64,000 nt of DNA from Macrostomum lignano. Lineage: Eukaryota. The notes below the pieces were generated by a model. The model was not told where the DNA came from, searched no databases, and saw only the letters and a program-made list of their open reading frames with translations. The stretch is from NCBI GenBank assembly GCA_002269645.1, contig NIVC01000744.1, positions 213,251-277,250 on the forward strand, in the 5' to 3' direction. The position numbers were made by a program, and so were the translations under genes. Shown here one piece after another: positions 9,971 to 62,574 of the stretch (position 1 is the first letter of the stretch; each line of letters starts with the position of its first letter).

Positions 9971-12953
9971 CACGGTGCTTCCCACGTGGCAAAATGACTT
10001 AAAAATGGCCCAAGAAAACGGTTACTAATGTTGCAAACTAGGGTGCCTCAGCTGTCTAAAACATATTTTAAAAGAATCGTTAGTGCTTGTCTTGTCATGA
10101 TAAAGCCAATTAAACACTTATACTATTTCAAGTGTCTTTAATGCATTGTAAAGTGTAGAACTTCAAGTTTAATCATTTATGAGACAAGTACAATCAATAA
10201 TTTTAAAGTGAGGGAGTGGTTGAACTCAAGTCACTGCCTCAAATCACGCAATATGCCCCTAATTGTATGAAGAGCTTATATTGGAAAAGTGTCAGAGGGG
10301 TGGGGTGAACAGGAGTACATTCGTGCAATGTTCACCTCTCCAGATCCTAGTAGTGGTTCTAAATGAGTGCTCTTGCATAGTGCTTTAGCCCTAATCAATA
10401 AATTTTACTTTCAGTTTATTGATTGGCTTTAAAATGAGTTGATACGGTGAGTTAGAGAAGCATTGGGTTAAATATTGTTAGTGTGACAAAGGTCAAGAAA
10501 ATCAGCTCATACTCCTGAATTCTAGCTAAACTCTACGACCTATCTTCTAGAAAAGATAGTTGATTAAGCAATGCCCAACAGCTTGAAGTCCCATGACCAG
10601 TGCCAGCAGAGTGTATGTCTACTTTGTCTGCGAAAGGCTGAGCGCCGCCTGAATGACATCACAACTGTTGAGTAGTACGTCCTTCCGAATTATTCGTCTG
10701 TGCGGCATCTTCTGCCTGTTGGAGTCTGCGAGGGCTGCCGTCGAATTATTTCTTCGCTTGGAGGCCCAGCACCTCGGCCTTTGCCGCCCAGACTCAACTA
10801 TGAGCAAATGCTAGCAGATCTGAGCAGCAATCCTGTGAGTCGAAGATCGCAACCAAACTGCCCATGCGAGATCTGCAAGATTGCCCGCAGCAACCTGCGC
10901 AAAAATGCAGATCCACACAGCACCTATGCAACTGGTACACTTAACTGCACCAGAGGCCGTCCTTCAACTAGTGCAGATGCAGCCCAGGCTCCTTTGCGGC
11001 TCTGCTCTGGCTGCCACTCGCCCATCGGCAAGGGCAAGTCGCATCGCTGCAACAAAGCAACCCGGCTAGCAAATCTGAGCAGCTTGATCAGCCCTGGAAC
11101 AGCAGAGCAAGTCGCTAGCACCACAGTTGCTGCCAAGCTGCAGGCCACCGGGGCAAGCACCGTTGCACTGAAAAGAGCGCAAGGAGGCAGACCTCTAGCT
11201 GTCACTGTGGCCAACACAGCCTGCAGCACACGACAGCTGGCTCCAACAACAGCTAACACGATGCTTTGGCTGAAAGTTGCATTAAATCTCAGCAACCGGC
11301 AAACTCTGCAAGCGGCCAGCATTTTGCGAAAAGGAGCCGGCTCAGGGAAGGCTGTGCAGTCGAACTTGGGTGCAAGCCTCACTGCCAGAAGCCGGCATCT
11401 GAAAGACTTTTTTGTGAGCAAGCTGCTTGAAGTCGACAGCAAAGTGGCTACCGCAAAAAACGCCGTGATCTGCAGTGATGTGCAAGGCCTGATTGAGAAG
11501 GTCGCTTCTGAGAGGGGCTACACGGATGTCGACGTAAAGCTTGGTCTTGACGGAGGCGGTGGATTTTTTAAAATTTGTGCCAGCCTGCTGCATCGAAGTG
11601 ATAGCCAAGAAAGTCAGTCGACAAAGGACCAGCTGTTTGCCGATTCTGGAGTAAAAAAGCTGTTGCTGCTAGCAGCTGTGCCAGACATGAGCGAGTGCTA
11701 CAATAGCATCAAAGTTCTCTTTCAGCATTTGAGCCTTGGAGGAGTAACGGTGAATGCAGTAGCAGCTGACATGAAGGTTGCGAACCTCATCTGTGGCCTC
11801 CAGTCACATGCATCCAGGCATCCATGCTGCTATTGCGAGGCTCCTGTGCCACTGAACACCTGTGGCCCGATGAGAACTGTTGGAAGAATACGACAGATGG
11901 CCTTGGACTTCGCCAGCAGCGGCAAAGAGAGAAGCAGTGCAAAGGATTTCTACAACTGCGTTGAGGCCCCTCTGCTTCAGGCAGACGATGAAGCCGAGAT
12001 TCTGTTCGTTCTGCCTCCACCGGAGCTGCATCTGATGCTTGGCATCACGAATCGCATCTTCGACGCATTGAACTCGGCGTGGGGCAACAACTGCGCGTAT
12101 CAGTGGGCCCATGACCACAGCATTGTGCGCGTTGGATACCGTGGCGGCAGCATGGAGGGAAACGCCTGCCACACTCTGCTTCGCAAATCTGCAGAGCTTC
12201 ATGAGTATCTGCCGCAGAACCTGAAGCCCTACGGTTCTTGTTTGATGCGTTTAGATTCCGTCGTCAGTAGCTGCTTCGGTTCCCAGCTGCATGCAGATTT
12301 CCAGCAGCACATTTTGCAATTCAAGACTGCATTTGAGCTGCTTGGTCTGCCAATTTTCCCGAAAGTGCACGTGCTGCTGCACCACGTAGGAACCTTCTGT
12401 AGCGCCACTGGTAGCGCACTCGGCCTGTTTAGCGAACAATCCTTTGAGAGCGTGCACCGCGATTTTGCTCAAACTTGGCAGAGATTTGCTCTGCCCACGC
12501 AGCACAGCAAATTCCCAGACGCGTTGCTCTCAGCTGTCATTGCATACAACAGCTTTCACATTTGACAATTTACTTGTAGCTTAGTTTCAAATTCCTTTTG
12601 TCTTTACTGTACGAACTTAACTTGTTCTTTGTTGAATTTCATTTAGTATTGCTTATTCTTCTACTATTTCTTCAAAATTTTTGGCCTAAATTTCAGCTTT
12701 ATTTTGTTTAAATTCGCATTAATTTTTTCTTACATTTTTTCTGCTTAATGTTAATTTAATATATATTGCTCTTAGTTGGCTCTGCTTAATAGAAAAGGCC
12801 GTTAGAATAAAAAATTACTATATCATGATAAGACAAGCACTTACGATTCTTTTAAAATATGTTTTAGACAGCTGAGGCACCCTAGTTTGCAACATTAGTA
12901 ACCGTTTTCTTGGGCCATTTTTTAAGTCATTTTGCTACGTGGGAAGCACCGTG
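9971..12953 (+). mobile_element. Chapaev-type (CMC superfamily, RAG1/Transib-related) DNA transposon, complete with both ends
   Basis: TIRs at 9971-10102 and 12821-12953 (3 mismatches, 1 indel) begin CACGGTGCTTCCCACG. A 4-bp TSD TCCT lies at 9967-9970 and 12954-12957. The element carries a single transposase gene. Confidence 0.88.
10571..12565 (+). pseudogene. Chapaev transposase, 664 codons, one in-frame TAG at codon 35
   Basis: The ATG at 10571 is in frame with track ORF 10700-12565. The N-terminus MPNSLKSHDQCQQSVCLLC fits the H-x7-C-x2-C Chapa zinc finger, followed by PVGVCEGC, CPCEIC and CSGC..H.C. The predicted catalytic triad is D327 (GLDGGG), D400 (AADMK) and E626 (SEQSFES). Zn-binding CCYC and H-x4-H (KVHVLLHH) occur in the same order as in RAG1/Transib cores. 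TAG at 10673-10675. Confidence 0.85.
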
Positions 12954-21500: not shown

Positions 21501-24500
21501 CGAAACCCGTATTCTAGAAACTCGGCATTTTTAATAAAAAGCGTGTTCCTTAAATTCTAACCCTAAATCTAGTTCTTTTGAGAAACCAGTTCTATTTTTT
21601 TCTAGAAACCGTCTTATTCTTAGAAGATAATTTTTTCGAAGAAATCTGTTTTTATTTTAAGAAACCATTCCTGTTTCAAACAAATCCGTCTTCTTTCGTC
21701 TTCTTTCTAAGAAAACTGCCTTCTTTCTAAGAAACTCGTCTTCTTTCTAAGAAACCGTCTTCTTTCTTAGAACACCGTCCTGTTTCTAATAAAACGGTCT
21801 TCTTTCTAAGAAAACTGTCTTCTTTCGAAGATACCCGTCTTTTTTCCGAGAAACTTGTCGTCTTTCTAAGAAACCGTCTTCTTAGAAATCTGTCCTGTTT
21901 CTAATAAAACCGTCTTCTTACCCTTGAGTTTTACCAGAAAACAGTCTTATCATTCTGTTTCACAAAAGCGGCACGGGCAGCCGCCAGCATGTCGGCTTCA
22001 ATTTCTGCTTTTGCACGAATTTCTCGCATCGAATGCAAATTCGGTTTATTGAGTCAGCCAACTATGACGAGCTTCTAACATCCCACCCGTGTGCACCCGG
22101 CCAGATTCTGAAGTCCATGATGACGGATCTGGACTTCGACGCTGACGGCACGGTCAGCCTGGACGAGTGGAAGCGAGGCGGCCTGACGACCATCCCGCTG
22201 CTGGTGCTGCTCGGCCTCGACACCACCGTGAAGGACGACGGCAGCCACGTGTGGCGGCTGAAGCACTTCGCCAAGGGCCGGCACTGCAACATCTGCATGA
22301 AGCAGCTGGTCGGCCTGGGCAAGCAGGGCCTGGGCTGCGTGTTTTGCAAGTACACCGTGCACGCCAAGTGCGTGAGCCGCGCCCCCGCCTCGTGCATCTT
22401 CACCTACACCAAGTCCAAGCGGCCGGCGCCAGGGGCGCAGCAGAGCATGCAGCACCACTGGACTGAGGGCAACTGCGTGGAAAAGTGCGCCAAGTGCCGC
22501 AAGTCCATCAAGTCCGGCATCACAGGTGAGAGATTGATTAGCAACCCGGTCTGCTCAACTGCTCTACCCACAGCTAGATCTTTGCACCCCACTCTACCCA
22601 CCCCAGCTAGATCTTTGCACCCCACTCTACCCACCCCAGCTAGATCTTTGCACCCCACTCTACCCACCCCAGCTAGATCTTTGCACCCCATTCTACCCAC
22701 CCAGCTAGATCTTTGCACCCCACTCTACCCACCTAAGCTAGATCTGCATCCACCTCAGCTAGATCTGCACCCACCTCAGCTAGATCTTCATCCACCTCAG
22801 CTAGATCTGCACCCACCTCAGCTAGATCTTCATCCACCTCAGCTAGATCTGCACCCACCTCAGCTAGATCTTCATCCACCTCAGCTAGATCTGCACCCAC
22901 CACAGCTAGATCTGCACCTACCTCAGCTAGATCTGCACCCACCACAGCTAGATCTGCACCCACCACAGCTAGATCTGCACCCACCACAGCTAGATCTGCA
23001 CCCACCACAGCTAGATCTGCACCCACCACAGCTAGATCTGCACCCACCACAGCTAGATCTGCACCCACCACAGCTAGATCTGCACCCACCTCAGCTAGAT
23101 CTGCACCCACCACAGCTAGATCTGCACCCACCTCAGCTAGATCTGCACCTACCTCAGCTAGATCTGCACCCACCACAGCTAGATCTGCACCCACCACAGC
23201 TAGATCTGCACCCACCTCAGCTAGATCTGCACCCACCACAGCTAGATCTGCACCTACCTCAGCTAGATCTGCACCCACCTCACCGCAGGCATGCAGTGCC
23301 GCTGGTGCAAGGTCAGCCTGCACAACAAGTGCGCGGAGCAGTGGACCAGCGAGTGCGACCTCGGCGCCCTCCGCGAGCACGTGCTGCCCCCACGGCGATC
23401 TTCCCCGCCGTACTGGACCGCGGCAGGCCGGCGGCGGCAGCCAACGAGAGCCTCCCCAACAGCCAGTCCGCCGGGTCGCAGCTGGACCAGCTGGCCTGCT
23501 CGCCTCATCAGCAGTCCTCCAGCTTCCAGATTGTGCCGCCCTCCGGCTGCGTGCCGCTGCTGGTGTTCATCAACCCGAAGTCTGGCGGCAAGCAGGGAGT
23601 CCGCATTCTGCACAAGATGCAGTACCTGCTGAACCCGCGCCAGGTGTACGACCTGGTGAAGGACGGCGGGCCGTACATCGGGCTGAACTTTTTCAGGGAG
23701 CTGCCGCAGTTCCGCATCCTGGTGTGCGGCGGCGACGGCACGGCGGGCTGGCTGCTGGAGGCCATGGACAAGTTCGACTGGGGCGACAACCGGCCGCCGG
23801 TGGCCGTGCTGCCCCTGGGCACCGGGAATGACCTGGCCCGGTGCCTGCGCTGGGGCGGCGGCTACGAGAACGAGAGCCTGGAGAAAATTCTGCACCGCAT
23901 CAGCCAGGGCAGCGTGATGCTGCTGGACCGCTGGAAGATCAACTTCTCCGAGCCCGCGCCGGAGAACAACGGCGACGCGGCCGAGGCTGGCGACGCTGGC
24001 AGCGGCGCCGGGGCGGCCGCGGAGGACCCGGCGGGGGCGGCGGCTGTCGAGCCAGCCCGGGACGAGATCCCCGCCACAATCATCAACAACTACTTCAGCA
24101 TCGGGGTGGACGCGGCCATCGCGCACCGGTGGCACCTGTTGAGGGAGAAGCACCCGGAAAAATTCAAGTCGCGATTTCGGAACAAGGCCTACTATGTGGA
24201 GATGGGCGCGACCGAGGTGCGGAGGCTTGCTGGGATTCGGGGACTGGGACTCAGGGACTCCGGGTCTCGGGGACTAGGGACTCTGGGATTCGGAAACTGG
24301 GACTCTGGGATTCGGGGACTGGTACTCTCGGACTCGGGGACTGGGACTCTGGGATTCGGGGACTGGTACTCTCGGACTCGGGGACTGGGACTCGGGGACT
24401 GGGACTCTGGGATTCGGGGACTGGTACTCTAGGACTCGGGGACTCGTACTCTGGGATTCGGGGACTGGGACTCTAGGATTCGGGGACTGGGACTCTGGGA

Positions 24501-38273: not shown

Positions 38274-38776
38274 CAGGCTCGATCCCGCAGTCCCGAGTCC
38301 GCCAAGTGCCGCAGGAGCCGTGATTGCTGAGTCCCCAATGAAAGCCGGCAGCCCGCATGAAGCAACTGAATATTTCATTGGCAGCAGAAGAAATTCTACT
38401 AAAGCAACCTGACTGCTGCTTTTGCAACTGGATTGGCTTTTGCTTGAATCGGTTGAATTCATTCTGGCAGAAGGAATTCCCACGAGGGCTAGAGGCGCAG
38501 CAGAAAGAGAACGAGGATTGCTCTTAGGAGAGGCAATCAAGCAAGACCTGCGGAACAACAGCGGGGGAAGCGGCTTCAGTCCCGCAGCCTTTAATCGCAG
38601 CGGCTCGAAAATCCCAGGGTCGCAAATTCCACAGACTTTCGATGCCGAACGGTCCTACGAAATCCCCGAGCAGCCCCGGTTTAAAGCAGACGGAAACAAA
38701 ACTGCTCTGGGGGAGTTCGGCTTCAAAACCAACACCTTAAAGCTGGCACCAATTTGAATCTGCCACTGGACAGATA

Positions 38777-39281
38777 TAGCAATCCATTCTGTTCTGCATC
38801 ATCCATGCAGGCTAGATTAGCAATCCATTATATTCCTGCATCATCCATGCAGGCTAGATTAGCAATCCATTCTATTCCTGCATCATCCATGCAGGCTAGA
38901 TTAGCAATCCATTCTGTTCCTGCATCATCCATGCAGGCTAGATTAGCAATCCATTCTGTTCCTGCATCATCCATGCAGGCTAGATTAGCAATCCATTCTG
39001 TTCCTGCATCATCCATGCAGGCTAGATTAGCAATCCATTCTGTTCCTGCATCATCCATGCAGGCTAGATTAGCAATCCATTCTATTCCTGCATCATCCAT
39101 GCAGGCTAGATTAGCAATCCATTCTATTCCTGCATCATCCATGCAGGCTAGATTAGCAATCCATTCTGTTCCTGCATCATCCATGCAGGCTAGATTAGCA
39201 ATCCATTCTGTTCCTGCATGCAGGCTAGATTAGCAATCCATTCTGTTCCTGCATCATCCATGCAGGCTAGATTAGCAATCC
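38777..39281 (+). repeat. 42-bp satellite, array 1 (TCCTGCATCATCCATGCAGGCTAGATTAGCAATCCATTCTGT)
   Basis: About 12 units, each with a CCTGCAT/ATGCAGG hairpin. Confidence 0.95.
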
Positions 39282-40176
39282 AATGTTCGGTATACTATTC
39301 CTAATCTCCCCAGAAAAGCGCCCCTCAAATCGTGGAATTAAAGCTCTGTTATTGAAGCGCAAGCACTGAATTCAGCGATCCGTGATTAATAATTCCCCTT
39401 AAAACTCCCCTTTCTCCAGTCGCTTGCCATACAGAGCCGGTGTGTCCGCTGGCTTAAAAAATCGCTTGCACAGGCAGCAGGGCGGCTGCTTGTCGTCTTT
39501 GCTGCTGCAGGTTTCAGCTGCTGATCAAAGCCAGAGAGCAGGGGGGCATGGGGCACTGCCCTACGCGTGGGGTCGCCCCGGTAAAGAAGCGACAATCCGC
39601 ATCGGCGCAGTCTTGAGCACGATCTCGCTTTTCTTCTTAGTGCGAGGATGAGCGCTCTGTCAGTCACGGTCATGATTCACAATCCTTGCAGAAATATGCT
39701 GTAAAATGCTACAAACTCTACTACTTTCATGTGAGTAGTGCTTTAGCGAAAATTCATCCCATTTTTATTGGGTTTGTCAAGAACGGCTGCAGCATCGATG
39801 AGGATGGCGATTTTATTGCCAGCAAACCAGCTCAAATGTCCTCAAACCTCTCGGCTTGGCCTCCGGGACGCAAATTAGCTGCAATTAATCATCGATCGCG
39901 GGGTCTTGATTGACTCTCACCTGACGGGCCGCATCCTGCTGCCGGCCGCCAAAACCGCCCACCCCATCCGCAAATCCCGGTGCCGCCCTAGAGCAGCCGC
40001 TGCATCAGCTCCTGTCAGAGCTACCGCCACAAAGTCTGCATCAATTTTCTGATGGCGGCTTGGGTGCATTGGGGGCGGCTGCATGCGCTGGGACTGTGTG
40101 TCAGTTTTGTGGGGTTAAATATTCAGGCAAAATAAACTATCCACTGGCTGTATGCTTTGATGAGATGCGCTTGATA

Positions 40177-41100
40177 GGTGAGATTGGATGCCTAAAGGGT
40201 GAGATTGGATGCTTGAAGGGTGAGATTGGATGCTTGAAGGGTGAGATTGGATGCTTGAAGGGTGAGATTGGATTCTTGAAGGGTGAGATTGGATGCTTGA
40301 AGGGTGAGATTGGATGCTTGAAGGGTGAGATTGGATGCTTGAAGGGTGAGATTGGATGCTTGAAGGGTGAGATTGGATGCTTGAAGGGTGAGATTGGATG
40401 CTTGAAGGTGAGATTGGCTGCTTGAGGGGTGAGATTGGATGCTTGAAGGTGAGATTGGATGCTTGTTGGGTGAGATTGGATGCTTGAAGGTGAGATTGGA
40501 TGCTTGTTGGGTGAGATTGGATGCTTGAAGGGTGAGATTGGATGCTTGAAGGGTGAGATTGGATGCTTGAAGGGTGAGATTGGATGCTTGAAGGGTGAGA
40601 TTGGATGCTTGAAGGGTGAGATTGGATGCTTGAAGGGTGAGATTGGATGCTTGAAGGTGAGATTGGCTGCTTGAGGGGTGAGATTGGATGCTTGAAGGTG
40701 AGATTGGATGCTTGTTGGGTGAGATTGGATGCTTGAAGGTGAGATTGGATGCTTGTTGGGTGAGATTGGATGCTTGAAGGGTGAGATTGGATGCTTGAAG
40801 GGTGAGATTGGATGCTTGAAGGGTGAGATTGGATGCTTGAAGGGTGAGATTGGATGCTTGAAGGGTGAGATTGGATGCTTGAAGGGTGAGATTGGATGCT
40901 TGAAGGTGAGATTGGCTGCTTGAGGGGTGAGATTGGATGCTTGAAGGTGAGATTGGATGCTTGTTGGGTGAGATTGGATGCTTGAAGGTGAGATTGGATG
41001 CTTGTTGGGTGAGATTGGATGCTTTTAGGGTGAGATTGGATGCTTGAAGGGTAAGATTGGAGGCCTGAATAGGGAGATTGGATGCTTGAAGGATGAGATT
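40177..41100 (-). repeat. 21-bp satellite, array 1 (GGGTGAGATTGGATGCTTGAA)
   Basis: About 44 units with a 249-bp higher-order period. Confidence 0.95.
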
Positions 41101-41502
41101 GTATGATCGGAAGTAGTGATTGCATACTTTTGGGATGATCTTAGCTTTCGTCAGCCAAATTTTATTAAAACTTAGTCCAAGCACGCTATAGCAAGCAGTC
41201 ACCTGTCTGCCGAGGTAGCCAGAGCAGTCATAAAAGTGTTCAAATTGTTTTCTTCACCTCAGAGACCTTTAGAATTCACTCGAGATTGAAAATCAGAAAT
41301 TCTCGCTGCTAATTAGGCATTGGAGATTGAATTCTCTGAAATTCGGGGCTGAGGGTTTTGCGTGACTTCCTCAGACCGCAGGAGTTTGGCTGCCCCCCCC
41401 CCCCTGATTAGTCCGGGGGTCGCGAACTGATGAGCTGGCAGGCTGGAGTGACAAGCAGGCAGCCACATTTCTGCACAGCCCTCGGAACCAGCGAAGTCTG
41501 AG

Positions 41503-44500
41503 GTGCAGAATGGATTGCTAATCTAGCCTTCATGGATGATGCAGGAACAGAATGGATTGCTAATCTAGCCGGCATGGATGATGCAGGAACAGAATGGATT
41601 GCTAATCTAGCCTGCATGGATGATGCAGGAACAGAATGGATTGCTAATCTAGCCTGCATGGATGATGCAGGAACAGAATGGATTGCTAATCTAGCCTGCA
41701 TGGATGATGCAGGAACAGAATGGATTGCTAATCTAGCCTGCATGGATGATGCAGGAACAGAATGGATTGCTAATCTAGCCTGCATGGATGATGCAGGAAT
41801 AGAATGGATTGCTAATCTAGCCTGCATGGATGATGCAGGAATAGAATGGATTGCTAATCTAGCCTTCATGGATGATGCAGGAACAGAATGGATTGCTAAT
41901 CTAGCCTGCATGGATGATGCAGGAACAAAATGGATTGCTAATCTAGCCTGCATGGATGATGCAGGAACAGAATGGATTGCTTATCTAGCCTGCATGGATG
42001 ATGCAGGAACAGAATGGATTGCTAATCTAGCCTGCATGGATGATGCAGGAACAGAATGGATTGCTAATCTAGCCTGCATGGATGATGCAGGAACAGAATG
42101 GATTGCTAATCTAGCCTGCATGGATGATGCAGGAACAGAATGGATTGCTAATCTAGCCTTCATGGATGATGCAGGAACAGAATGGATTGCTAATCTAGCC
42201 TTCATGGATGATGCAGGAATAGAATGGATTGCTAATCTAGCCTGCATGGATGATGCAGGAACAGAATGGATTGCTAATCTAGCCTGCATGGATGATGCAG
42301 GAACAGAATGGATTGCTAATCTAGCCTGCATGGATGATGCAGGAACAGAATGGATTGCTAATCTAGCCTGCATGGATGATGCAGGAACAGAATGGATTGC
42401 TAATCTAGCCTGCATGGATGATGCAGGAACAGAATGGATTGCTAATCTAGCCTGCATGGATGATGCAGGAACAGAATGGATTGCTAATCTAGCCTGCATG
42501 GATGATGCAGGAACAGAATGGATTGCTAATCTAGCCTGCATGGATGATGCAGGAACAGAATGGATTGCTAATCTAGCCTGCATGAATGATGCAGGAACAG
42601 AGTGGATTGCTAATCTAGCCGGCATGGATGATGTAGGAACAGAATGGATTGCTAATCTAGCCGGCATGGATGATGCAGGAACAGAATGGATTGCTAATCT
42701 AGCCGGCATGGATGATGTAGGAACAGAATGGATTGCTAATCTAGCCTGCATGCAGGAACAGAATGGATTGCTAATCTAGCCTGCATGGATGATGCAGGAA
42801 CAGAATGGATTGCTAATCTAGCCTGCATGGATGATGCAGGAACAGAATGGATTGCTAATCTAGCCTGCATGGATGATGCAGGAACAGAATGGATTGCTAA
42901 TCTAGCCTTCATGGATGATGCAGGAATAGAATGGATTGCTAATCTAGCCTGCATGGATGATGCAGGAACAGAATGGATTGCTAATCTAGCCTGCATGGAT
43001 GATGCAGGAATAGAATGGATTGCTAATCTAGCCTGCATGGATGATGCAGGAACAGAATGGATTGCTATTCTAGCCTGCATGGATGATGCAGGAACAGAAT
43101 GGATTGCTAATCTAGCCTTCATGGATGATGCAGGAACAGAATGGATTGCTAATCTAGCCTTCATGGATGATGCAGGAATAGAATGGATTGCTAATCTAGC
43201 CTGCATGGATGATGCAGGAACAGAATGGATTGCTAATCTAGCCTGCATGGATGATGCAGGAACAGAATGGATTGCTAATCTAGCCTGCATGGATGATGCA
43301 GGAACAGAATGGATTGCTAATCTAGCCTGCATGGATGATGCAGGAACAGAATGGATTGCTAATCTAGCCTGCATGGATGATGCAGGAACAGAATGGATTG
43401 CTAATCTAGCCTGCATGGATGATGCAGGAACAGAATGGATTGCTAATCTAGCCTGCGTGGATGATGCAGGAACAGAATGGATTGCTAATCTAGCCGGCAT
43501 GGATGATGCAGGAACAGAATGGATTGCTAATCTAGCCTGCATGAATGATGCAGGAACAGAGTGGATTGCTAATCTAGCCGGCATGGATGATGTAGGAACA
43601 GAATGGATTGCTAATCTAGCCGGCATGGATGATGCAGGAACAGAATGGATTGCTAATCTAGCCGGCATGGATGATGTAGGAACAGAATGGATTGCTAATC
43701 TAGCCTGCATGCAGGAACAGAATGGATTGCTAATCTAGCCTGCATGGATGATGCAGGAACAGAATGGATTGCTAATCTAGCCTGCATGGATGATGCAGGA
43801 ACAGAATGGATTGCTAATCTAGCCTGCATGGATGATGCAGGAACAGAATGGATTGCTAATCTAGCCTTCATGGATGATGCAGGAATAGAATGGATTGCTA
43901 ATCTAGCCTGCATGGATGATGCAGGAATAGAATGGATTGCTAATCTAGCCTTCATGGATGATGCAGGAATAGAATGGATTGCTAATCTAGCCTGCATGGA
44001 TGATGCAGGAACAGAATGGATTGCTAATCTAGCCTGCATGGATGATGCAGGAACAGAATGGATTGCTAATCTAGCCTGCATGGATGATGCAGGAACAGAA
44101 TGGATTGCTAATCTAGCCTGCATGGATGATGCAGGAACAGAATGGATTGCTAATCTAGCCTGCATGGATGATGCAGGAACAGAATGGATTGCTAATCTAG
44201 CCTGCATGGATGATGCAGGAACAGAATGGATTGCTAATCTAGCCTGCATGGATGATGCAGGAACAGAATGGATTGCTAATCTAGCCGGCATGGATGATGC
44301 AGGAACAAAATGGATTGCTAATCTAGCCTGCATGAATGATGCAGGAACAGAATGGATTGCTAATCTAGCCTGCATGGATGAACAGAATGGATTGCTAATC
44401 TAGCCTGCATGAATGATGCAGGAACAGAATGGATTGCTAATCTAGCCGGCATGGATGATGCAGGAACAGAATGGATTGCTAATCTAGCCTGCATGGATGA

Positions 44501-44735
44501 TGTAGGAACAGAATGGATTGCTAATCTAGCCGGCATGGATGATGCAGGAACAGAATGGATTGCTAATCTAGCCGGCATGGATGATGTAGGAACAGAATGG
44601 ATTGCTAATCTAGCCTGCATGCAGGAAAAGAATGGATTGCTAATCTAGCCTGCATGCAGGAACAGAATGGATTGCTAATCTAGCCTGCATGGATGATGCA
44701 GGAACAGAATGGATTGCTAATCTAGCCTGCATGCA
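41503..44735 (-). repeat. 42-bp satellite, array 2 (reverse complement of array 1)
   Basis: About 77 units, including a 959-bp higher-order duplication. Confidence 0.95.
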
Positions 44736-45289
44736 GAAGTAGATTAAACTGCACGGATTTGCCTCATCCGATAAAGATTTAGGATTAGACTGCAGCGCCG
44801 CCAGTCCCACCTGGGATGGAGTAGCCGTGAGTTCCGTGCTCAACTCCCTTCTTCCTGGATTCGATCGGGAACTCCCAGGTGAGGCCGAACTGGGGACCGA
44901 AATTTGCTTTTCCTTCGAATCGATCTTCGCCAAGTTCCGGAGCGGCTCCCCAGCCTCCCGCCACGGATCTGCAATTTTGAATTTCAGAGACTGTCCGGAA
45001 CCCGCTCGATCGCCGCCTCCCCAATATTGGTTTTGCCCTCCTTTTCAAGGCAGCTCAGGTCTCCCATCGACCCTCGCCTTCACCTGCACCGATGCCCGCA
45101 CGCGAGGCGCTGACTTCGCTCCGCCAGTTTGCCGTTTTCTCGAGCCTCATCTGAGGCAGCTGCTTTAATGCTGAACCAGTGGGGCGTGACTGGGAACTGC
45201 CTAGAAGTTTTTTGAAAAAATAACACAAGCATTTCAGGTCAGCTGAGAACTTGCGGTCTACAGAAAAGCATTTATTCTTAATTGAAAGT

Positions 45290-45715
45290 CATCTGATCTC
45301 ATCTTAAAATCATCCAATGTCAATTTAATATAATCTCGAACTTTTTGCATCCAATCATATTCTAATGGCATCTGATCTCACCTTAAAAGCAACCAATCCC
45401 ACCCTACAAACATCTAATCTCACCCTTCAAGCATCTAATCTCACCCTTCAAGCATCTAATCTCACCCTTCAAGCATCTAATCTCACCCTTCAAGCATCTA
45501 ATCTCGCCCTCAAGCATCTAATCTCGCCCTAAAAAATCCAATCGCACCCTAAAAGCATCGAGTCTCATGATACAAGCATCCTATCTCGCCTTAAAAGCTT
45601 CTACCCAACAAGAATCTAATATCTCACCCAATCTCATCCAATATCAACACACAAACATCCAATCTCACCCAGTAAGCATCCAATCTCGCCCCACAAGCAT
45701 CCAATCTCACCCTTT
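45290..45715 (+). repeat. 21-bp satellite, array 2 (CTTCAAGCATCYAATCTCACC; reverse complement of the 40177-41100 family)
   Basis: Short conserved core with degenerate flanks. Confidence 0.85.
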
Positions 45716-47402: not shown

Positions 47403-47589
47403 CTAATGCGTCTGTGGCACTAACGGGCGTGGCTGTCAGCTCACCGGGCAGAGGTCACGGTACAGCGCAACCCTGTGGGTTTTTGCCATAGACATCAAAA
47501 GATTCACTCTGCACTTCTGCGCTCCTAAGAGAGGCTGCTGCAGACAGGCGTTGACCCCAAGTAAACTTTTGGAAGCTATAAAAGTCTAA

Positions 47590-48019
47590 ATGAAGACCCA
47601 ACTACTCGTGCTGCTGGTTCTGCTTGCCCTGCTCGCGGTTCTCGGTGAGTTTCGCCCCGAATTTAGGTTTATTTAGCATATCCTTGGCTTGCCTGCTGCT
47701 AATAACCAATCGCATGCAAAACGCCCATGCAGACTGCTCAACCGCGTGCAGACCGGAATGCCTCAAGAAAGGCAGGCGCTGTCAGGATAGCCTAGCCTCG
47801 TACTGCTGCTCAAAGCGCTGCTCCGGGATACCTGGCTATTGGAAGATGTGCGAGTACACCATTTTACCCTCGATTTTGAACAAGGAGAACTTCGAGACTG
47901 ACAAACTCCTCTTCAATATTGACACTCTATGGTCGGGCACTCAAAATCTACAATCAATATTGACAGATCAAGCTTCAATTTTGACAAACTCTGGTTCAAT
48001 TTTGACAATGCACGTTTAG
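47590..48019 (+). CDS. Small secreted inhibitor-cystine-knot (knottin) peptide precursor, 2 exons; C-terminus extended by a MITE insertion
   Basis: Exon 1 (47590-47644) encodes the signal peptide MKTQLLVLLVLLALLAVL and ends at a phase-1 G|GTGAGT donor. The 88-nt intron has a CTAAT branch-like site and a CAG acceptor at 47732. Exon 2 gives DCSTAC-RPE-C-LKKGRR-C-QDSLASY-CC-SKR-C-SGIPGYWKM-C-E, the C-C-CC-C-C framework. The reconstructed original stop is TAA TGA (now at 48980-48985). The present frame reads on to TAG at 48017-48019. Confidence 0.8.
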
Positions 48020-48979
48020 TCAACTTCTCCTGGGAGAATTCGGTAACAAAGTAATCCAATGAAAGCCTGAACGGGGTTGAAGTGAGCTGTGCAAAATCAG
48101 CTTATTCTGACTTTGCTTTTTGGATCTACAAGTATTGATAAAATTTATTTTTCTCCATCCTTTAGACACACAGACTAAAATAGCCTGACTGGTTGGGCTG
48201 CAAAGTCTGATTCTATTTTGACAGAGTTGCTTCAAAACTGACACTCCATGGTTTGTGTACCCAAAAAGTCCGCTTCATTTTTGACAACTCCGAATCAATA
48301 TTGAACAGTTAACAATCGATTTTGACTAAGACATTTTTTGAAATAGATTTTGACAATTTTTACTAAGTTAAACCATACATGTACTCGTAGATACATGCAG
48401 CCAGTACCCCTTCTCCCAAATAGCAAGTACCCCCCCTCAAGAGAGAAATCTTAGTAAAAATTGTTAAAATCTATTTCAAAAAATGTCTTAGTCAAAATTG
48501 ATTGTTAACTGTTCAATATTGATTCGGAGTTGTCAAAAATGAAGCGGACTTTTTGGGTACACAAACCATGGAGTGTCAGTTTTGAAGCAACTCTGTCAAA
48601 ATAGAATCAGACTTTGCAGCCCAACCAGTCAGGCTATTTTAGTCTGTGTGTAAAGGATAGAGAAAAATAAATTTTATCAATACTTGTAGATCCAAAAAGC
48701 AAAGTCAGAATAAGCTGATTTTGCACAGCTCACTTCAACCCCGTTCAGGCTTTCATTGGATTACTTTGTTACCGAATTCTCCCAGGAGAAGTTGACTAAA
48801 CGTGCATTGTCAAAATTGAACCAGAGTTTGTCAAAATTGAACCAGAGTTTGTCAAAAATGAAGCTTGATCTGTCAATATTGATTGTAGATTTTGAGTGCC
48901 CGACCATAGAGTGTCAATATTGAAGAGGAGTTTGTCAGTCTCGAAGTTCTCCTTGTTCAAAATCGAGGGTAAAATGGTA
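47857..48979. mobile_element. Foldback MITE: non-autonomous DNA transposon with about 510-530 bp inverted arms and an 82-bp spacer
   Basis: The left arm (47857-48367) is a near-perfect reverse complement of the right arm (48450-48979); the right arm has one extra 21-bp duplication. Ends are CACCATTTTACCC / GGGTAAAATGGTA. A TA duplication lies at 47855-47856 and 48980-48981. Internal TTTTGACA and TCAATATTGA motifs are repeated. Confidence 0.9.
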
Positions 48980-49295
48980 TAATGACTGACGTCAATGGCA
49001 ACTGCGCGAGTCTTTGGCTGATGCTCGAGACAGACACTTTGATTGACCACTGAACTTGTTCACCAATATGAGTTGAAAACACAGTAATTTGAGTCTTTGG
49101 ATTGGAGCTTATAATACCTTTTAGATCTCAAAAGTGGAGCAAAGCTTTAACTTATGCGTTGTTACAATCGCAAAAATCGTGAAAAAATACAAAAACATCA
49201 TGGGTTGCAATCGATTAGCATTACTGTCCATTCCGCCCGACTTCCCTGAGCAGGCGCACTCGGATACATACGCAGTCGTATGCACAGGCACACAC

Positions 49296-52379
<3,084 letters not shown>

Positions 52380-57518: not shown

Positions 57519-60500
57519 GCACCACGGTGCAGATAAATGCCGCTACCTCCTCGTGGTCAGAGCGGAGAGCCGCGCTTAACTGCTGCGGCGGCCAAATGCG
57601 GCAGGACCAAGCGAGGGCAGCGGAGCGCCCGTCGGCGTGTTGAGCGGAACCGATGAGGCCGGCTGCGTGGCGCCGCCCGTCGAGCTGTCGCGCGGGTCCA
57701 CTCGGATCCTCCGGGTGGCGCCGGGGACCGTGAGGCTCAACTGCATCGAGCCCAAGCTGTACCACAGGGCATGCTTCGGGTCGGGACGCTGAACTGCCGC
57801 ACTCTCAAGGCTGCTTGGCGTAGAGGGGTGCTGGCGACATCATCTCGCTGCAGGAGGTGTCTATCAAGGCCGACCCGGGACTTCATTGTGAGGACTTGGG
57901 CGCCGGGTGGACCCTCTACTATACTTCTGCGGACCAGCGAGGCAGTGGAGGAGTTGGAGCGCTGATCGGGCCGAGGCTGCAGCAGAGCTGTCGCTGCGTC
58001 TCCCTGTCCCCCGGTTGCTTCGGATCGACGTCCGGCTACGCAGTCGGAATGCTCGCCTGTTCTGCGCGTACGCGCGCCCTGCCACACGCCCTGACGAGGC
58101 TCAAGAGTTTTTCGAGCAGCTCTCAGTGCAGGTAGAGGCGATGGCGCAGCGTGACACAGCGGTCGTCCTCGGAGACCTGAACGCAGTCCTGCGTAGGTCC
58201 GAGAGGTCGCTGTTCGTGACGCCACGCGGGAACAACAACACCGAGGCACTGGAGGACTTCCTGGAGAGGCAGGACATGGTGTTGGCACACACCCGCTTCC
58301 GCAAGCCACTGAGCGGTCTCGCAACCTTCGTGGGCTGCAAGCGGAGGCGACGGAACGCGCGTGGCAGGAACGCAACCCGGAGAAAAGCACAGCTCGACCA
58401 CGTGCTCGTGCGTTTCCGTGAGCGTCGTCGCGCCGTCAACTGCCGCACCATCAAGCCGCTGGCTCTGCGGTCCGATCACCGGCTCCTCATCTGCGACCTC
58501 AACCTTCGCGATCCGCTCTACCGTCCGCCGAAGCGGCCACCGCGGCGCTACTACCGCGCGCTCAGAGCCACCGATACGCAGCGTTGCTTTGCTAGCGCCT
58601 TTAACACTGCGCTGGGCGACAAGCGTGGAAATGCCGAGTATGCGGAAGTGTGCGCTGCAGTCAGAACCGCCTCGGAGCAAGCAGTCCCGATGATGCAACC
58701 GGCTCAACGTGGGCAGCCGGTCTGGCAGGACGACCCTGCGATTCAGGCAGCGAGGGAAGATCTGGAGAGGCTCCGCTTGAGCAGGTGACCAACCCGCGAG
58801 GCAGAGGCAGCTCTGGCGGCTGTCTACCTGCAGCGCCAACAAGCGGCTGTCGATGACGCCATTCAGGCTGTCTCTGCCGCTGGGCCGATGCCAGAGGGCG
58901 CGTGGCCTGGTCCGCCATCAACGCTCTGACGGGGCGAAAGCGGCGCAATCCGCTGAACCTGGCTGGTGACACTCCGGATGAGCGCAGGAACGAGCTGCGC
59001 GAGTTCTTCGCCGCCATCGTCAACGCGCCGCCACCCCCGCTGCCAGACAGTCTGACGCTGCCGCCGGAACGCCGTTGCCGGCAGAGGAGAGTTTCAGCGT
59101 AGGCCCAGTCAACGCAGCCGACGTTGTCAAGCTCGCCCAGCAGTCACCGGGCGGGAAAGCGCTGGGTCCGGACGAGGTGCCCATCGAGGCGCTGCGCATC
59201 CCCTGTGTGGCCGCTGAGGTCGCCAGAGTGATGAACCGCGTGCTCTTCGGTGAGGCGGCGCCCAACGAATGGACCACGGCGCACATCGTTGCTGTTCCAA
59301 AGAAGCCGGGCACCACTAGGCCGGGCACCACGGGCACATCTGCCTTCAGTCCTGTGCAGCGAAGCTGTTCAACCGGATGCTGCTTTCGCGGTTGCAGCCC
59401 GTGCTGGATCCGTACCTGCGCCCAGAGCAGAACGGGTTCCGGCCCATCGCGGCACAGTGGCGCAGATCCTGGCTCTTCGCCGAGTCATCGAGGAGGCGCG
59501 GATTCGCCAGTCGATCCTGATTTTAATCTTTATTGATTTCAAGAAGGCATTCGACTCGGTTGTCAGAGCCGTGCTTCCAATGGTGCTCCGCGCGTACAAC
59601 GTGCCCGAGCAGCTGATCTCCGCCATCATGGCGATGTACCGTGATACGACAGCTGCTGTGACAACACCGGACGGCCTATCGGACTCCTTTGAGACATCCT
59701 CCGGAGTACTTCAGGGAGATACGCTGGCGCCGTTCCTGTTCGTCCTGGTGCTTGACTGGGTGCTGCGGACTGCTCTTCCTACCGACGACGACGGTTTTCT
59801 GCTGCGGCGACGCGTAGGTCGACGTCAACCGGAGAAGCGGCTCAGCGTGCTTGGCTACGCCGACGACCTCGCCCTGCTGTCCTCGACCGTCGAGGGCGCC
59901 CAACGGCAGCTGGACAGGCTAGTTGCCGTTGCGGCGAGTGTCGGCCTGGTGGTCAACACACAGAAGACCGTTGTGCTCTGCGTGCCGGACGACATCGAGG
60001 CTGCAATTTATTCTGCCGAGGCGCTGACGGGCAGGCGACCGAACTCCCGCGATGTCAGCAGTTCGTCTACCTCGGCGGTCTGGTTCCAGACGCTCGCGAG
60101 GACCTGCGACGCCGCCGCGGGCTTGCCTGGGCTGCCTTTCGTTCTGTGAGGGAGTCCTGCAGTCGAGGCCCTACCGGACCGCCAGAGGGCGGCGCTGTTC
60201 CAGGCGGTAATCGAGACCGTCCTGCTGTACAACGCCGAGACCTGGACGCTGACGGACTCACTCGAACAGCAAGTCGATGCGGCGCACGCTGGTCTGCTGC
60301 GCGCCGCCTTCAACATCGGCGTCGAGCGAGTCACCAACGCGGCACTCTATCGCCGCGCTGGCCTGCCACGTCCAAGTGATCTACTGCGCCGTCGGCGACT
60401 CCAGCTCGCAGGCCATCTCATCCGCGCCGAGTCGTACTGCCCACAGCCGGTGCAGGAGGTGCTGCTGCTCACGCTGCAGGCACCCTACCGGCGAGGTCAA

Positions 60501-60608
60501 GCGCGAACTCGGCGTTATGTCGACTGTCTGCTGGCTGACGCCGGCGCCCCGGACACTGCCGGTGGCGCGGCCTTTGTTCGCGCCCAAGCCATGAAGCGCG
60601 CCCTGTGA
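57519..60608 (+). mobile_element. RTE-clade non-LTR retrotransposon (APE endonuclease + reverse transcriptase), near full length, inactivated by multiple frameshifts and a stop
   Basis: APE motifs: MLRVGTLNCRTLK (57771), SGGVGALI, LFCAYA, VVLGDLNA, QLDHVLVR, SDHRLL. RT motifs: ALGPDEVP, IFIDFKKAFDSV, GVLQGDTLAPFLF, GYADDLALL, GLVVNTQKT, FVYLGG. The C-terminus ends MKRAL-stop at 60606-60608. The coding frame is split over several ORF fragments. No TSD was identified. Confidence 0.92.
57538..57603 (+). ncRNA. HDV-like self-cleaving ribozyme core at the RTE 5' end (P1 5' strand missing)
   Basis: P2: TGCCGC 57538-43 / GCGGCA 57598-603. P3: ACC 57545-47 / GGT 57555-57, closing the L3 loop TCCTCGT. 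P1 3' strand: CAGAGC 57558-63. P1.1: GG 57564-65 pairs with CC in L3. P4: GCCGC 57569-73 / GCGGC 57585-89. J4/2: GGCCAAAT, with the candidate catalytic C. Confidence 0.7.
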
Positions 60609-62574
60609 CGCTGACTTTTGCCATCTTGACAGCGTATTTTGTTGTTGTTGTTATTACAATTACCACTAACACTATGCTCATCTTGGTAGTAGTGCATACT
60701 TTTGTTCACAAGCACTTACTTTCGCGTCGAAAACTTTTTCAATTGTATTCAACCAACTAGATAATTTTAGCAAAGTCTTCGGTAGCGCCTTAATACTTGT
60801 TTACACTGCCATCTTTCATTACTTTAAATAAATCGAATAATACGAACCACAAATGTTGCACTAATATAGAGTACGAATAGGAAAGAGCCTTTAAAAGTAA
60901 TTCGTATGCATCGTTAATGAAATTCCTGCAATTCAAAAAATTGCAAAATAATATTTTTCCAAGAAGAAAGAATTCAAGTCAAAATTTAAAATTATGTTTC
61001 CTTTGGCCTTAGGCTTCATTTTTTGTTACTTACTAATTATTAAACACAAAATAAATGCAACCATTTGTTCCTATCAGATTTTTTCAACAGAACTCTGTTT
61101 AATTTTAAGCTACGGCTAAAACAATAAAAAGTAAAAAACTGTCCTAGCAAAACGTGTGGCCCACAAAATAATGAGGCAGACAGTGTGGGTGAGGCAGAAG
61201 AGGGGGTGGCTCTGGCTCAGTATTCATGTCTAAATATTGCATAGTCGCTTTGCAATTTTTCCAGGTTCTTCAAAAGATTTGGATGTCCCAGTAAAAGTCC
61301 ACTTAGGTAATAGCCACTTTGGTAATAGTATATTTTGGTATGCTGAAAAATTAAGTGTTAGGTTAGTGCTAGCTAAGAAAGATAGGAAATAAATTGAAAA
61401 TGTACTCTAATCTACATACTCACACACTGCAAGGTTCAAATTCAAGTAGAAATATTTATACATTATGTTTAAGCTGATTAATATTACCAAATATGGAAGA
61501 TACTAAGCCTGACATCTTGGCTCCTTGCAAATGCAAGAATAATATCAGTGTTTATTCATACATCCCCATGCTAATCCTGATAATATTATCCACATGATGC
61601 CATGCCAATAGTGCCCTGCTTATTTGCATAATAGCTAAAGCTAAATAACAATATTATGCAATATATTAACTTCTTGTGGTTGCTATTCAAATTCTCTATA
61701 CTGGAGTTGAGTAAAAGAAATTGAAACAAAGACGCTGCCAGGGCAATCAGGTTTAATATTTGTGTAGGTTAATATAGGTTGACTGTAAATATTATAATAT
61801 TAATGATCTAGTTAGATTAGGTGCACACACTGGCTCACTAACTCACTTAACTATTATATATTGGATAATATTAGTATTGGGATTGGGCTAATTATAATAA
61901 TAATAGTTGCAATATTAACTACACTCTAAGTGAACTTAAATAATGTAATATTCTAGTATAAGTCTATGTCTACGGCAAGTAGTGTGACATCTATGTCTAT
62001 GATGAAGTGTCTAAAGGTTAGGCCTATTTGTAGCCACCTGAGAGACCAATTGTACAATGCATGCCTAACTGGTTTAAACTGGTTTTACCTTATATTTGCA
62101 TACAAAACACTATTCAAAACAAATAATATAATAAAAATTACAGTAAGTAAATAGTTGGTATATTACATTCCTAGAATATGTTACATTAGTATAAATTCTT
62201 AAAAAATACTAGCAATACAAATATAAATGCATATTTCATTACACATATAATGTTATATTATTTACACTTTGTATTTTTATTTTTATTGGGTTTCATAAGG
62301 ACCTATTTTGATTAATAAGCAGAGGGCTTATCTTTACCCTTCTAGTCTAGTTAGATATTTTCAATGATATAAGTTATAATATTATATGATTAATAATTCT
62401 TAGACATATTTGTAATAAGCTATAGGCCTATGAATGTTTAGATTTACTTCTCTTTGAGCATATTCTAATTTGGTTAAATTTGTGCATTAACTTTGTAAAA
62501 AAAATTAAAGGCAGCAAAGAACATTAAGCAATTGTTGAAAATTGAAATTTGAAGTAAGTAATTATAAAGGAAGT

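Follow-up and report, generated by a model that had tools for sequence, protein, structure and literature searches.

The 64,000-nucleotide stretch of Macrostomum lignano DNA analyzed here (contig NIVC01000744.1, positions 213,251 to 277,250 of the forward strand; hereafter the window) contains a small two-exon gene for a secreted peptide, the stop codon of which is interrupted by a 1123-bp element with the features of a foldback DNA transposon. Before the insertion, the product of this gene was a 59-amino-acid (aa) secreted peptide with eight cysteines. Apart from the interruption the gene is intact, with its splice sites and all eight cysteine codons present. A protein search with the restored precursor returned one cluster alone, which came from M. 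lignano itself: BOX15_Mlig004682 g1-g3 (hereafter Mlig004682), represented by the proteins P0001 (g2) and P0002 (g1/g3). The corresponding genomic loci, L001 (g2), L002, and L003, all share the two-exon structure of the window gene. L002 and L003 are 99.8% identical to each other, and L001 is 98% identical to both; the g1 and g3 contigs are likely haplotigs, and the g2 contig is distinguished by an additional ~2.6-kb insertion on the 3′ side of the gene. The features of the interrupted locus are listed in Table 1.

The first-pass annotation of this locus had placed the insertion in the TA of a TAA stop codon and had predicted an empty site, GAG TAA TGA CTGACG, in an allele or paralog of the gene. 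Such a site was found in L001-L003. At the homologous position, these loci read TGG AAG AAG TGC GAG TAA TGA CTGACGG, with TGG for TGA in L001. Thus, GAGTAATGA(G)CTGACGG occurs in the paralogs on three M. lignano contigs with neither a gap nor a footprint at the junction, and the outcome that would have spoken against an insertion did not occur. Removal of positions 47857-48981 from the window leaves ...AAG ATG TGC GAG TAA TGA CTGACG, and the shortened sequence aligns gap-free to all three loci, with homology of the 3′ flank extending for ~70 nucleotides (nt). Agreement with the empty site extends from the left as far as GAGTA and from the right back to TAATG; therefore, exactly TA was duplicated. 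The original TAA TGA is still present at the right junction, as had been proposed. We conclude that the empty site in three paralog loci confirms an insertion accompanied by a 2-bp TA duplication. A 3-bp TWA duplication of the PIF/Harbinger-like type was also considered; it needs an extra, unexplained base as well as a mutated duplication, and the TA duplication is preferred.

Table 1. Features of the interrupted peptide gene and of the inserted element, in window coordinates
Feature	Position	Strand	Basis
35-nt upstream block GGTTTTTGCCATAGACATCAAAAGATTCACTCTGC	47478..47512	+	Invariant alignment columns, window versus paralog loci
Exon 1, ATG and signal peptide MKTQLLVLLVLLALLAVL	47590..47644	+	Phase 1 end; matches Mlig004682 exon 1
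GTGAGT splice donor	47645	+	Directly 3′ of exon 1
Intron, 88 nt, GT...AG	47645..47732	+	Position conserved in Mlig004682 paralog
Exon 2, original coding part (D)CSTACRPECLKKGRRCQDSLASYCCSKRCSGIPGYWKMCE, eight Cys	47733..47854	+	8/8 Cys conserved in P0001/P0002
Left TA target-site duplication; first two bases of the original TAA stop	47855..47856		Junction reading, empty site
Predicted read-through extension, 54 codons YTILPS...LTMHV plus TAG stop at 48017-48019	47855..48019	+	Frame translation, shuffle test
Putative foldback non-autonomous DNA transposon, 1123 bp, 5′-CACCATTTTACCC...GGGTAAAATGGTA-3′	47857..48979		Arms, hairpin fold; absent from paralog loci
Left arm, 511 nt, ~10 copies of TTCAATWTTGACA	47857..48367		Arm alignment, motif count
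Unpaired loop, 82 nt	48368..48449		Arm alignment, RNA fold
Right arm, 530 nt, one additional 21-nt subrepeat unit	48450..48979		Arm alignment
Right copy of the TA duplication	48980..48981		Junction reading, empty site
Original TAA TGA, still intact, 1.1 kb 3′ of the coding sequence	48980..48985	+	TAATGA at the same place in L002 and L003
Original 3′ flank/untranslated region, still alignable with paralogs	48982..49050	+	Flank alignment

The two arms of the element are ~99% complementary. Between them there are four substitutions, a 2-bp indel, and a 21-bp indel; the last reflects an additional TTCAATTTTGACAAACTCTGG unit in the right arm. One of the four substitutions lies at the very tip (5′ CACC... 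versus ...GGTA 3′): the element begins with CACCATTTT and finishes with AAAATGGTA, where a perfect inverted terminus would finish with GGTG. A repeat of such length and identity cannot arise by chance. The RNA fold of the 1123 nt is a single hairpin with a free energy of -915.7 kcal/mol. The boundaries given in the first-pass annotation, 47857 and 48979, proved exact to the base when judged by the arm alignment and the flanking TA. Both arms are studded with the 12-nt near-palindromic motif TTCAATWTTGACA, some copies of which are spaced by 21 nt. Its density amounts to 25 per kb within the element versus 0.16 per kb in the remaining window, and no other cluster of the motif was detected in the window or in L001-L003. 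These copies are probably transposase-binding sites. The longest open reading frame (ORF) wholly within the element comprises 74 aa, and a search of 5.8 billion proteins with the concatenated six-frame translation revealed no protein relatives at E ≤ 1 and no misannotated or exonized copies. Rfam and tRNA scans of the window gave no hits. Further copies of the element were found neither in the remainder of the window nor in the 55 kb of L001-L003 (119 kb of M. lignano DNA in total), and the terminal 20-mer of the element had one chance match, without extension, among the metagenome contigs of the Joint Genome Institute (JGI).

A long inverted duplication can also be made during assembly, from a palindromic chimeric long read (a missed adapter or a foldback read). 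Palindromic read artefacts exist, and such artefacts duplicate local sequence in inverted orientation. Assemblies of M. lignano are built from long reads and contain an extreme amount of repeats (PMC5730564). In the present case, however, both arms are foreign to the locus and enclose a unique 82-nt loop, the arms differ from one another by the 21-bp unit, the 2-bp indel, and the four substitutions, and the insert is bounded by a 2-bp duplication with both flanks collinear with the paralogs. We consider an artefact of this kind scarcely credible. Alternatively, the palindrome might have formed locally during double-strand-break repair or template switching, via a hairpin intermediate and a 2-bp microhomology. 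This would accommodate the single known copy, a 2-bp repeat that could be microhomology, and a 3′ terminal base that is not complementary to the 5′ one. A repair origin is nevertheless most unlikely, because the inserted sequence has no source in the window, is AT-rich (a GC content of 36% versus 47% for the window), and is organized like a transposon, with terminal inverted repeats and ~10 motif copies per arm.

When the interrupted gene was compared with Mlig004682, we obtained a synonymous divergence (dS) of ~0.17 and a ratio of nonsynonymous to synonymous divergence (dN/dS) of ~0.8-0.9 over 59 codons; the flanks were ~72% identical. At this distance, the interrupted gene is an older paralog of Mlig004682, not an allele. 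The arms of the element diverge by ~0.8%, compared with 17% at synonymous sites and ~28% in the flanks of the paralogs, so that the arms are much younger than the gene duplication. In the first-pass annotation, the near-identity of the arms had been taken to suggest a recent and possibly polymorphic insertion. This reasoning is not supported, since the identity of the arms strictly records when the two were last the same and does not give the date of the insertion. That the insertion is recent or polymorphic is still plausible. The same comparison bears on the converse scenario, in which the element is ancestral, was precisely excised from the Mlig004682 copies, and is retained in the window as the old state. 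Nothing specific speaks for precise excision, which is no more than formally possible, the comparison being one with paralogs rather than an allele. A footprint usually remains after cut-and-paste excision, whereas L001-L003 all show the clean GAGTAATGA with a functional stop codon, so that three footprint-free excisions would be required. Moreover, an element predating the duplication should have far more diverged arms unless these were continually homogenized, and the arms are 20 times more similar than the genes. We regard precise excision as highly improbable.

Because the element begins with C, the TAA stop codon became TAC (Tyr), composed of the left TA and the first base of the element, and the frame is open for 54 codons. 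From exon 2 it continues as YTILPSILNKENFETDKLLFNIDTLWSGTQNLQSILTDQASILTNSGSILTMHV to the TAG stop, giving a predicted product of 59 + 54 = 113 aa. Both the conversion of the stop codon and a 113-aa variant ending in ...LTMHV had been anticipated; the former is borne out by the gap-free empty site in the three paralog loci and the latter by the translation. An open tail of 54 codons is no more than mildly unusual: it was matched by 1.3% of composition-preserving shuffles and is open longer than 98.7% of them. This openness is largely explained by the periodicity of the 21-nt (7-codon) subrepeat, which keeps a stop-free unit in frame. We found no sign of selection on the 54-aa tail, and the open frame cannot be taken as evidence of it. 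Reading the right arm backwards yields a 60-aa version of the tail, and either orientation of the element thus leads to a nearly equal extension. A look-up of the 101-aa genomic ORF yielded no record.

The open frame and the hairpin could be taken to mean that the insertion is functional, with the tail retained as a newly exonized extension or with the hairpin giving rise to small RNAs by which the element family or the peptide gene family is regulated. In agreement with this, the tail is open longer than nearly all shuffles and contains no cysteine that could interfere with the disulfide bonds, exon 2 shares an identical stretch of 25 nt with the paralogs, and the RNA fold has the potential for a duplex of ~510 bp. 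A perfect duplex of about this length is a classic Dicer substrate. On the other hand, the open frame is accounted for by the 7-codon periodicity, and the tail would be the same for every copy of the element. The hairpin lacks gene sequence, so that small RNAs derived from it would be directed against the transposon family and not the paralogs, and no homolog with such a tail was found in the protein databases. We therefore consider a functional insertion very unlikely.

Judged by its sequence, the element is a non-autonomous cut-and-paste DNA transposon of foldback architecture: besides its terminal inverted repeats, it has densely packed subterminal motifs and a clean 2-bp duplication, and its sequence is foreign to the site. 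The designation as a miniature inverted-repeat transposable element (MITE) in the first-pass annotation is appropriate in part. Terminal inverted repeats, a flanking target-site duplication, and the absence of coding capacity agree with it, but at 1123 bp the element is too large for a MITE (usually < ~800 bp), and one copy was seen in 119 kb. Literature searches for Mlig004682 and for MITEs or foldback elements of Macrostomum retrieved nothing relevant. We infer that the mobilizing transposase belongs to a superfamily that makes 2-bp duplications, either Tc1/mariner-like or animal CACTA/CMC-like. A genuine target preference for TA would favor the former, and the latter would follow if the CAC end and the subterminal repeats were the more reliable indication.

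Tc1/mariner elements with TA duplications, some of them intact, have been documented in M. lignano, and the terminal repeats of this superfamily can reach great length (PMC10379824). The sole M. lignano family with published ends, MS, has CTGGG ends and 24-bp inverted repeats (PMC10379824). The MS termini do not match CACCATTTT, MS being the only M. lignano Tc1/mariner family that was compared. With Tc1/mariner-derived (Stowaway-like) MITEs, the element shares the TA duplication, the lack of coding sequence, the AT-richness, and the location in or near genes. It differs from them in its larger size, in starting with CACC instead of a CAGT/CTGGG-type end, and in its at least 10 motif copies per arm, which are atypical of such MITEs. 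No autonomous partner was identified for it.

CACTA elements characteristically carry several repeat motifs in their subterminal regions. The animal CACTA-like (CMC) elements have invariable 5′-CAC...GTG-3′ termini and a 2-bp (to 3-bp) duplication (PMC6004678). In the M. lignano element, the 5′ end CAC and the 2-bp duplication fit this description, and the 3′ end GTA is one mismatch away from GTG. The element thus resembles non-autonomous animal CACTA/CMC elements, such as ENS1_Cis of Ciona savignyi and the CMC-NA MITEs, in its 5′-CAC terminus and its 2-bp duplication, but differs from them in finishing with GTA, and no transposase was detected. The TA duplication may be a coincidence (1 in 16) or a real preference, the latter of which would point away from CMC. 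An autonomous partner of the CMC type would be a fair candidate.

Regarding its overall architecture, the element is similar to the fold-back transposon Tc4 of Caenorhabditis elegans. Tc4, reportedly described by Yuan and coworkers in 1991, is said to consist nearly entirely of two long inverted arms with a short loop and to be non-coding in its common form. Its target is CTNAG, with a TNA duplication (PMC11071193). The M. lignano element, by contrast, resides in the site GAGTAATG (GAG-TA-ATG) with a 2-bp duplication, which rules out membership in the Tc4 family. The Foldback and Galileo elements of Drosophila make duplications of 7-9 bp, and Galileo belongs to the P superfamily. Membership in this group was likewise ruled out by the 2-bp duplication; in addition, the M. 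lignano element has dispersed motifs and a short 21-bp tandem, without long tandem arrays.

The first-pass annotation had described the peptide as a knottin. The spacing of the cysteines in the mature peptide, C10-x6-C17-x7-C25C26-x3-C30-x9-C40, is conserved in P0001/P0002 and fits the six-cysteine C-C-CC-C-C knottin pattern, to which an additional N-terminal CxxxC pair is prefixed. Profile matches all remained below the family thresholds, with E = 0.15 for 1dkc (the plant knottin PAFP-S), E = 0.16 for Toxin_7, and E = 1.3 for Conotoxin. No significant match was obtained to a curated knottin family in Pfam or a solved knottin in the PDB, and the AlphaFold2 model, with a mean predicted local distance difference test (pLDDT) score of 53, is too poor for use of the fold or of the disulfide topology (I-IV, II-V, III-VI in a knottin). 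A profile search of 1.84 billion representative proteins revealed no homologs outside Macrostomum and returned the M. lignano paralog alone. Like the inhibitor-cystine-knot peptides, which include PAFP-S, spider Toxin_7, and the O-superfamily conotoxins, the M. lignano peptide has a signal peptide and a short mature part of 41 aa with the C-x6-C-x7-CC-x3-C-x9-C framework; the extra CxxxC pair and the sub-threshold matches set it apart. As far as the evidence goes, the peptide appears to be knottin-like, lineage-restricted, and secreted, and of the original designation the cysteine spacing stands, whereas the family and structure comparisons do not carry it further. Upstream of the gene, the 35-nt block GGTTTTTGCCATAGACATCAAAAGATTCACTCTGC, 78-112 nt 5′ of the ATG, is identical between the window and the paralog loci, while the neighboring flanks are ~72-82% identical. 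This block is a candidate for a shared promoter or regulatory element of the peptide family.

Several repeats surround the interrupted gene. A 3.1-kb (ACTA)n microsatellite of ~770 units (49294-52379) begins 300 nt downstream, and mirror-ordered satellite arrays (38772-45713) form a large inverted structure just upstream. Within the latter, a 42-mer array (38772-39282) has its exact reverse complement at 41506-44733, and a 21-mer array (40169-41105) has a reverse complement of 90% identity at 45368-45713. The whole window is exceptionally rich in minisatellites, with 45 Tandem Repeats Finder rows at a score ≥ 200 and periods of mostly 10-42 nt; many of them yield long spurious ORFs. This abundance fits the known repeat richness of M. 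lignano. An ORF at 22033-24432 with EF-hand, C1, and diacylglycerol-kinase domains shows, over the part of its length covered by the best local alignment, 99% identity to M. lignano A0A1I8IF89, which assigns the window to M. lignano; the second-best hit, another kinase of this species, is 75% identical. The 33- and 21-nt minisatellites inside this open frame (22566-23282) are probably intronic. At 57907-60611 lies a degenerate retrotransposon resembling a long interspersed nuclear element (LINE), with a weak apurinic-endonuclease match at 57907-58785 and a reverse transcriptase at 59250-60149. A relative of ~74% identity is situated directly downstream of the paralog in L001 (10605-13802), and L002 and L003 contain shorter fragments. 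Synteny between the window and L001 was considered and rejected, as the two share the LINE family alone, in a different position and orientation. Finally, a non-repetitive ORF of 621 aa (10700-12565) had no Pfam or PDB match and may be transposon-derived or encode an orphan protein.

Taken together, we conclude with high confidence that a transposon has inserted into the stop codon of the peptide gene. Some observations weigh against this conclusion or parts of it. A single copy of the element was seen in the 119 kb, so that the mobility of the family, its consensus ends, and its target preference rest on one insertion. The 3′ end reads GTA and not the GTG of a perfect inverted terminus, and the sole M. 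lignano Tc1/mariner family with published ends starts with CTGGG, not with CACCA. Furthermore, the dN/dS of ~0.8-0.9 is compatible both with a functional gene that evolves fast and with a gene on which constraint had already been relaxed when the element inserted. In the sequence of events that we propose, a non-autonomous cut-and-paste transposon inserted into the TA of the TAA stop codon and duplicated the TA, pushing the original stop codon and the 3′ flank 1.1 kb away. Translation, if it occurs, would run 54 codons into the left arm. A transcript reaching the old 3′ end would hold a near-perfect duplex of ~510 bp that includes the new coding tail. Provided that transcription passes through the element, the hairpin that had been postulated for the mRNA is a thermodynamic certainty. 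Between the ATG and position 49300, the forward strand has a single AATAAA, which lies in the right arm (48666-48671), and premature polyadenylation at this site would still leave a long stem.

A duplex of this size would be expected to prevent translation or to undergo degradation or editing. We infer that loss or strong reduction of the function of this paralog is the most likely consequence, and probably the actual one. Such a loss would be tolerated because the fast-evolving family has other copies. Silencing of the paralogs in trans, as suggested in the first-pass annotation, appears unlikely without spreading of small RNAs from the hairpin and is mechanistically weak, because the hairpin consists of transposon sequence only and contains no gene sequence. 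It is very unlikely that the paralog has turned into a hairpin-RNA locus whose small RNAs, or their spreading into the 25-nt stretches shared with Mlig004682, regulate the gene or transposon family, or that the 54-aa tail has been retained as a new C-terminal domain. A MITE insertion at a gene end that alters the stop codon and adds residues is described for Coxiella burnetii (PMC5896051). The C-terminal extensions in C. burnetii are comparable to the present case in that a small non-autonomous element lies at a gene end, and differ from it in being bacterial and due to another element class.

The insertion represents an ordinary kind of transposon damage to a gene and leaves the current understanding of transposons and knottins unchanged. 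Its outcome follows a simple rule: TAA and TAG stop codons contain the TA target, and a TA-duplicating element that starts with C always converts them into TAC (Tyr), resulting in read-through into the element. For M. lignano, our analysis flags an undescribed family of foldback-type DNA transposons with a distinctive 12-nt motif, as well as a small and rapidly evolving family of secreted, cysteine-rich peptides, likewise undescribed, that is restricted to Macrostomum. Should the element family have retained its mobility, it may be of interest for M. lignano as a transgenesis-ready model.

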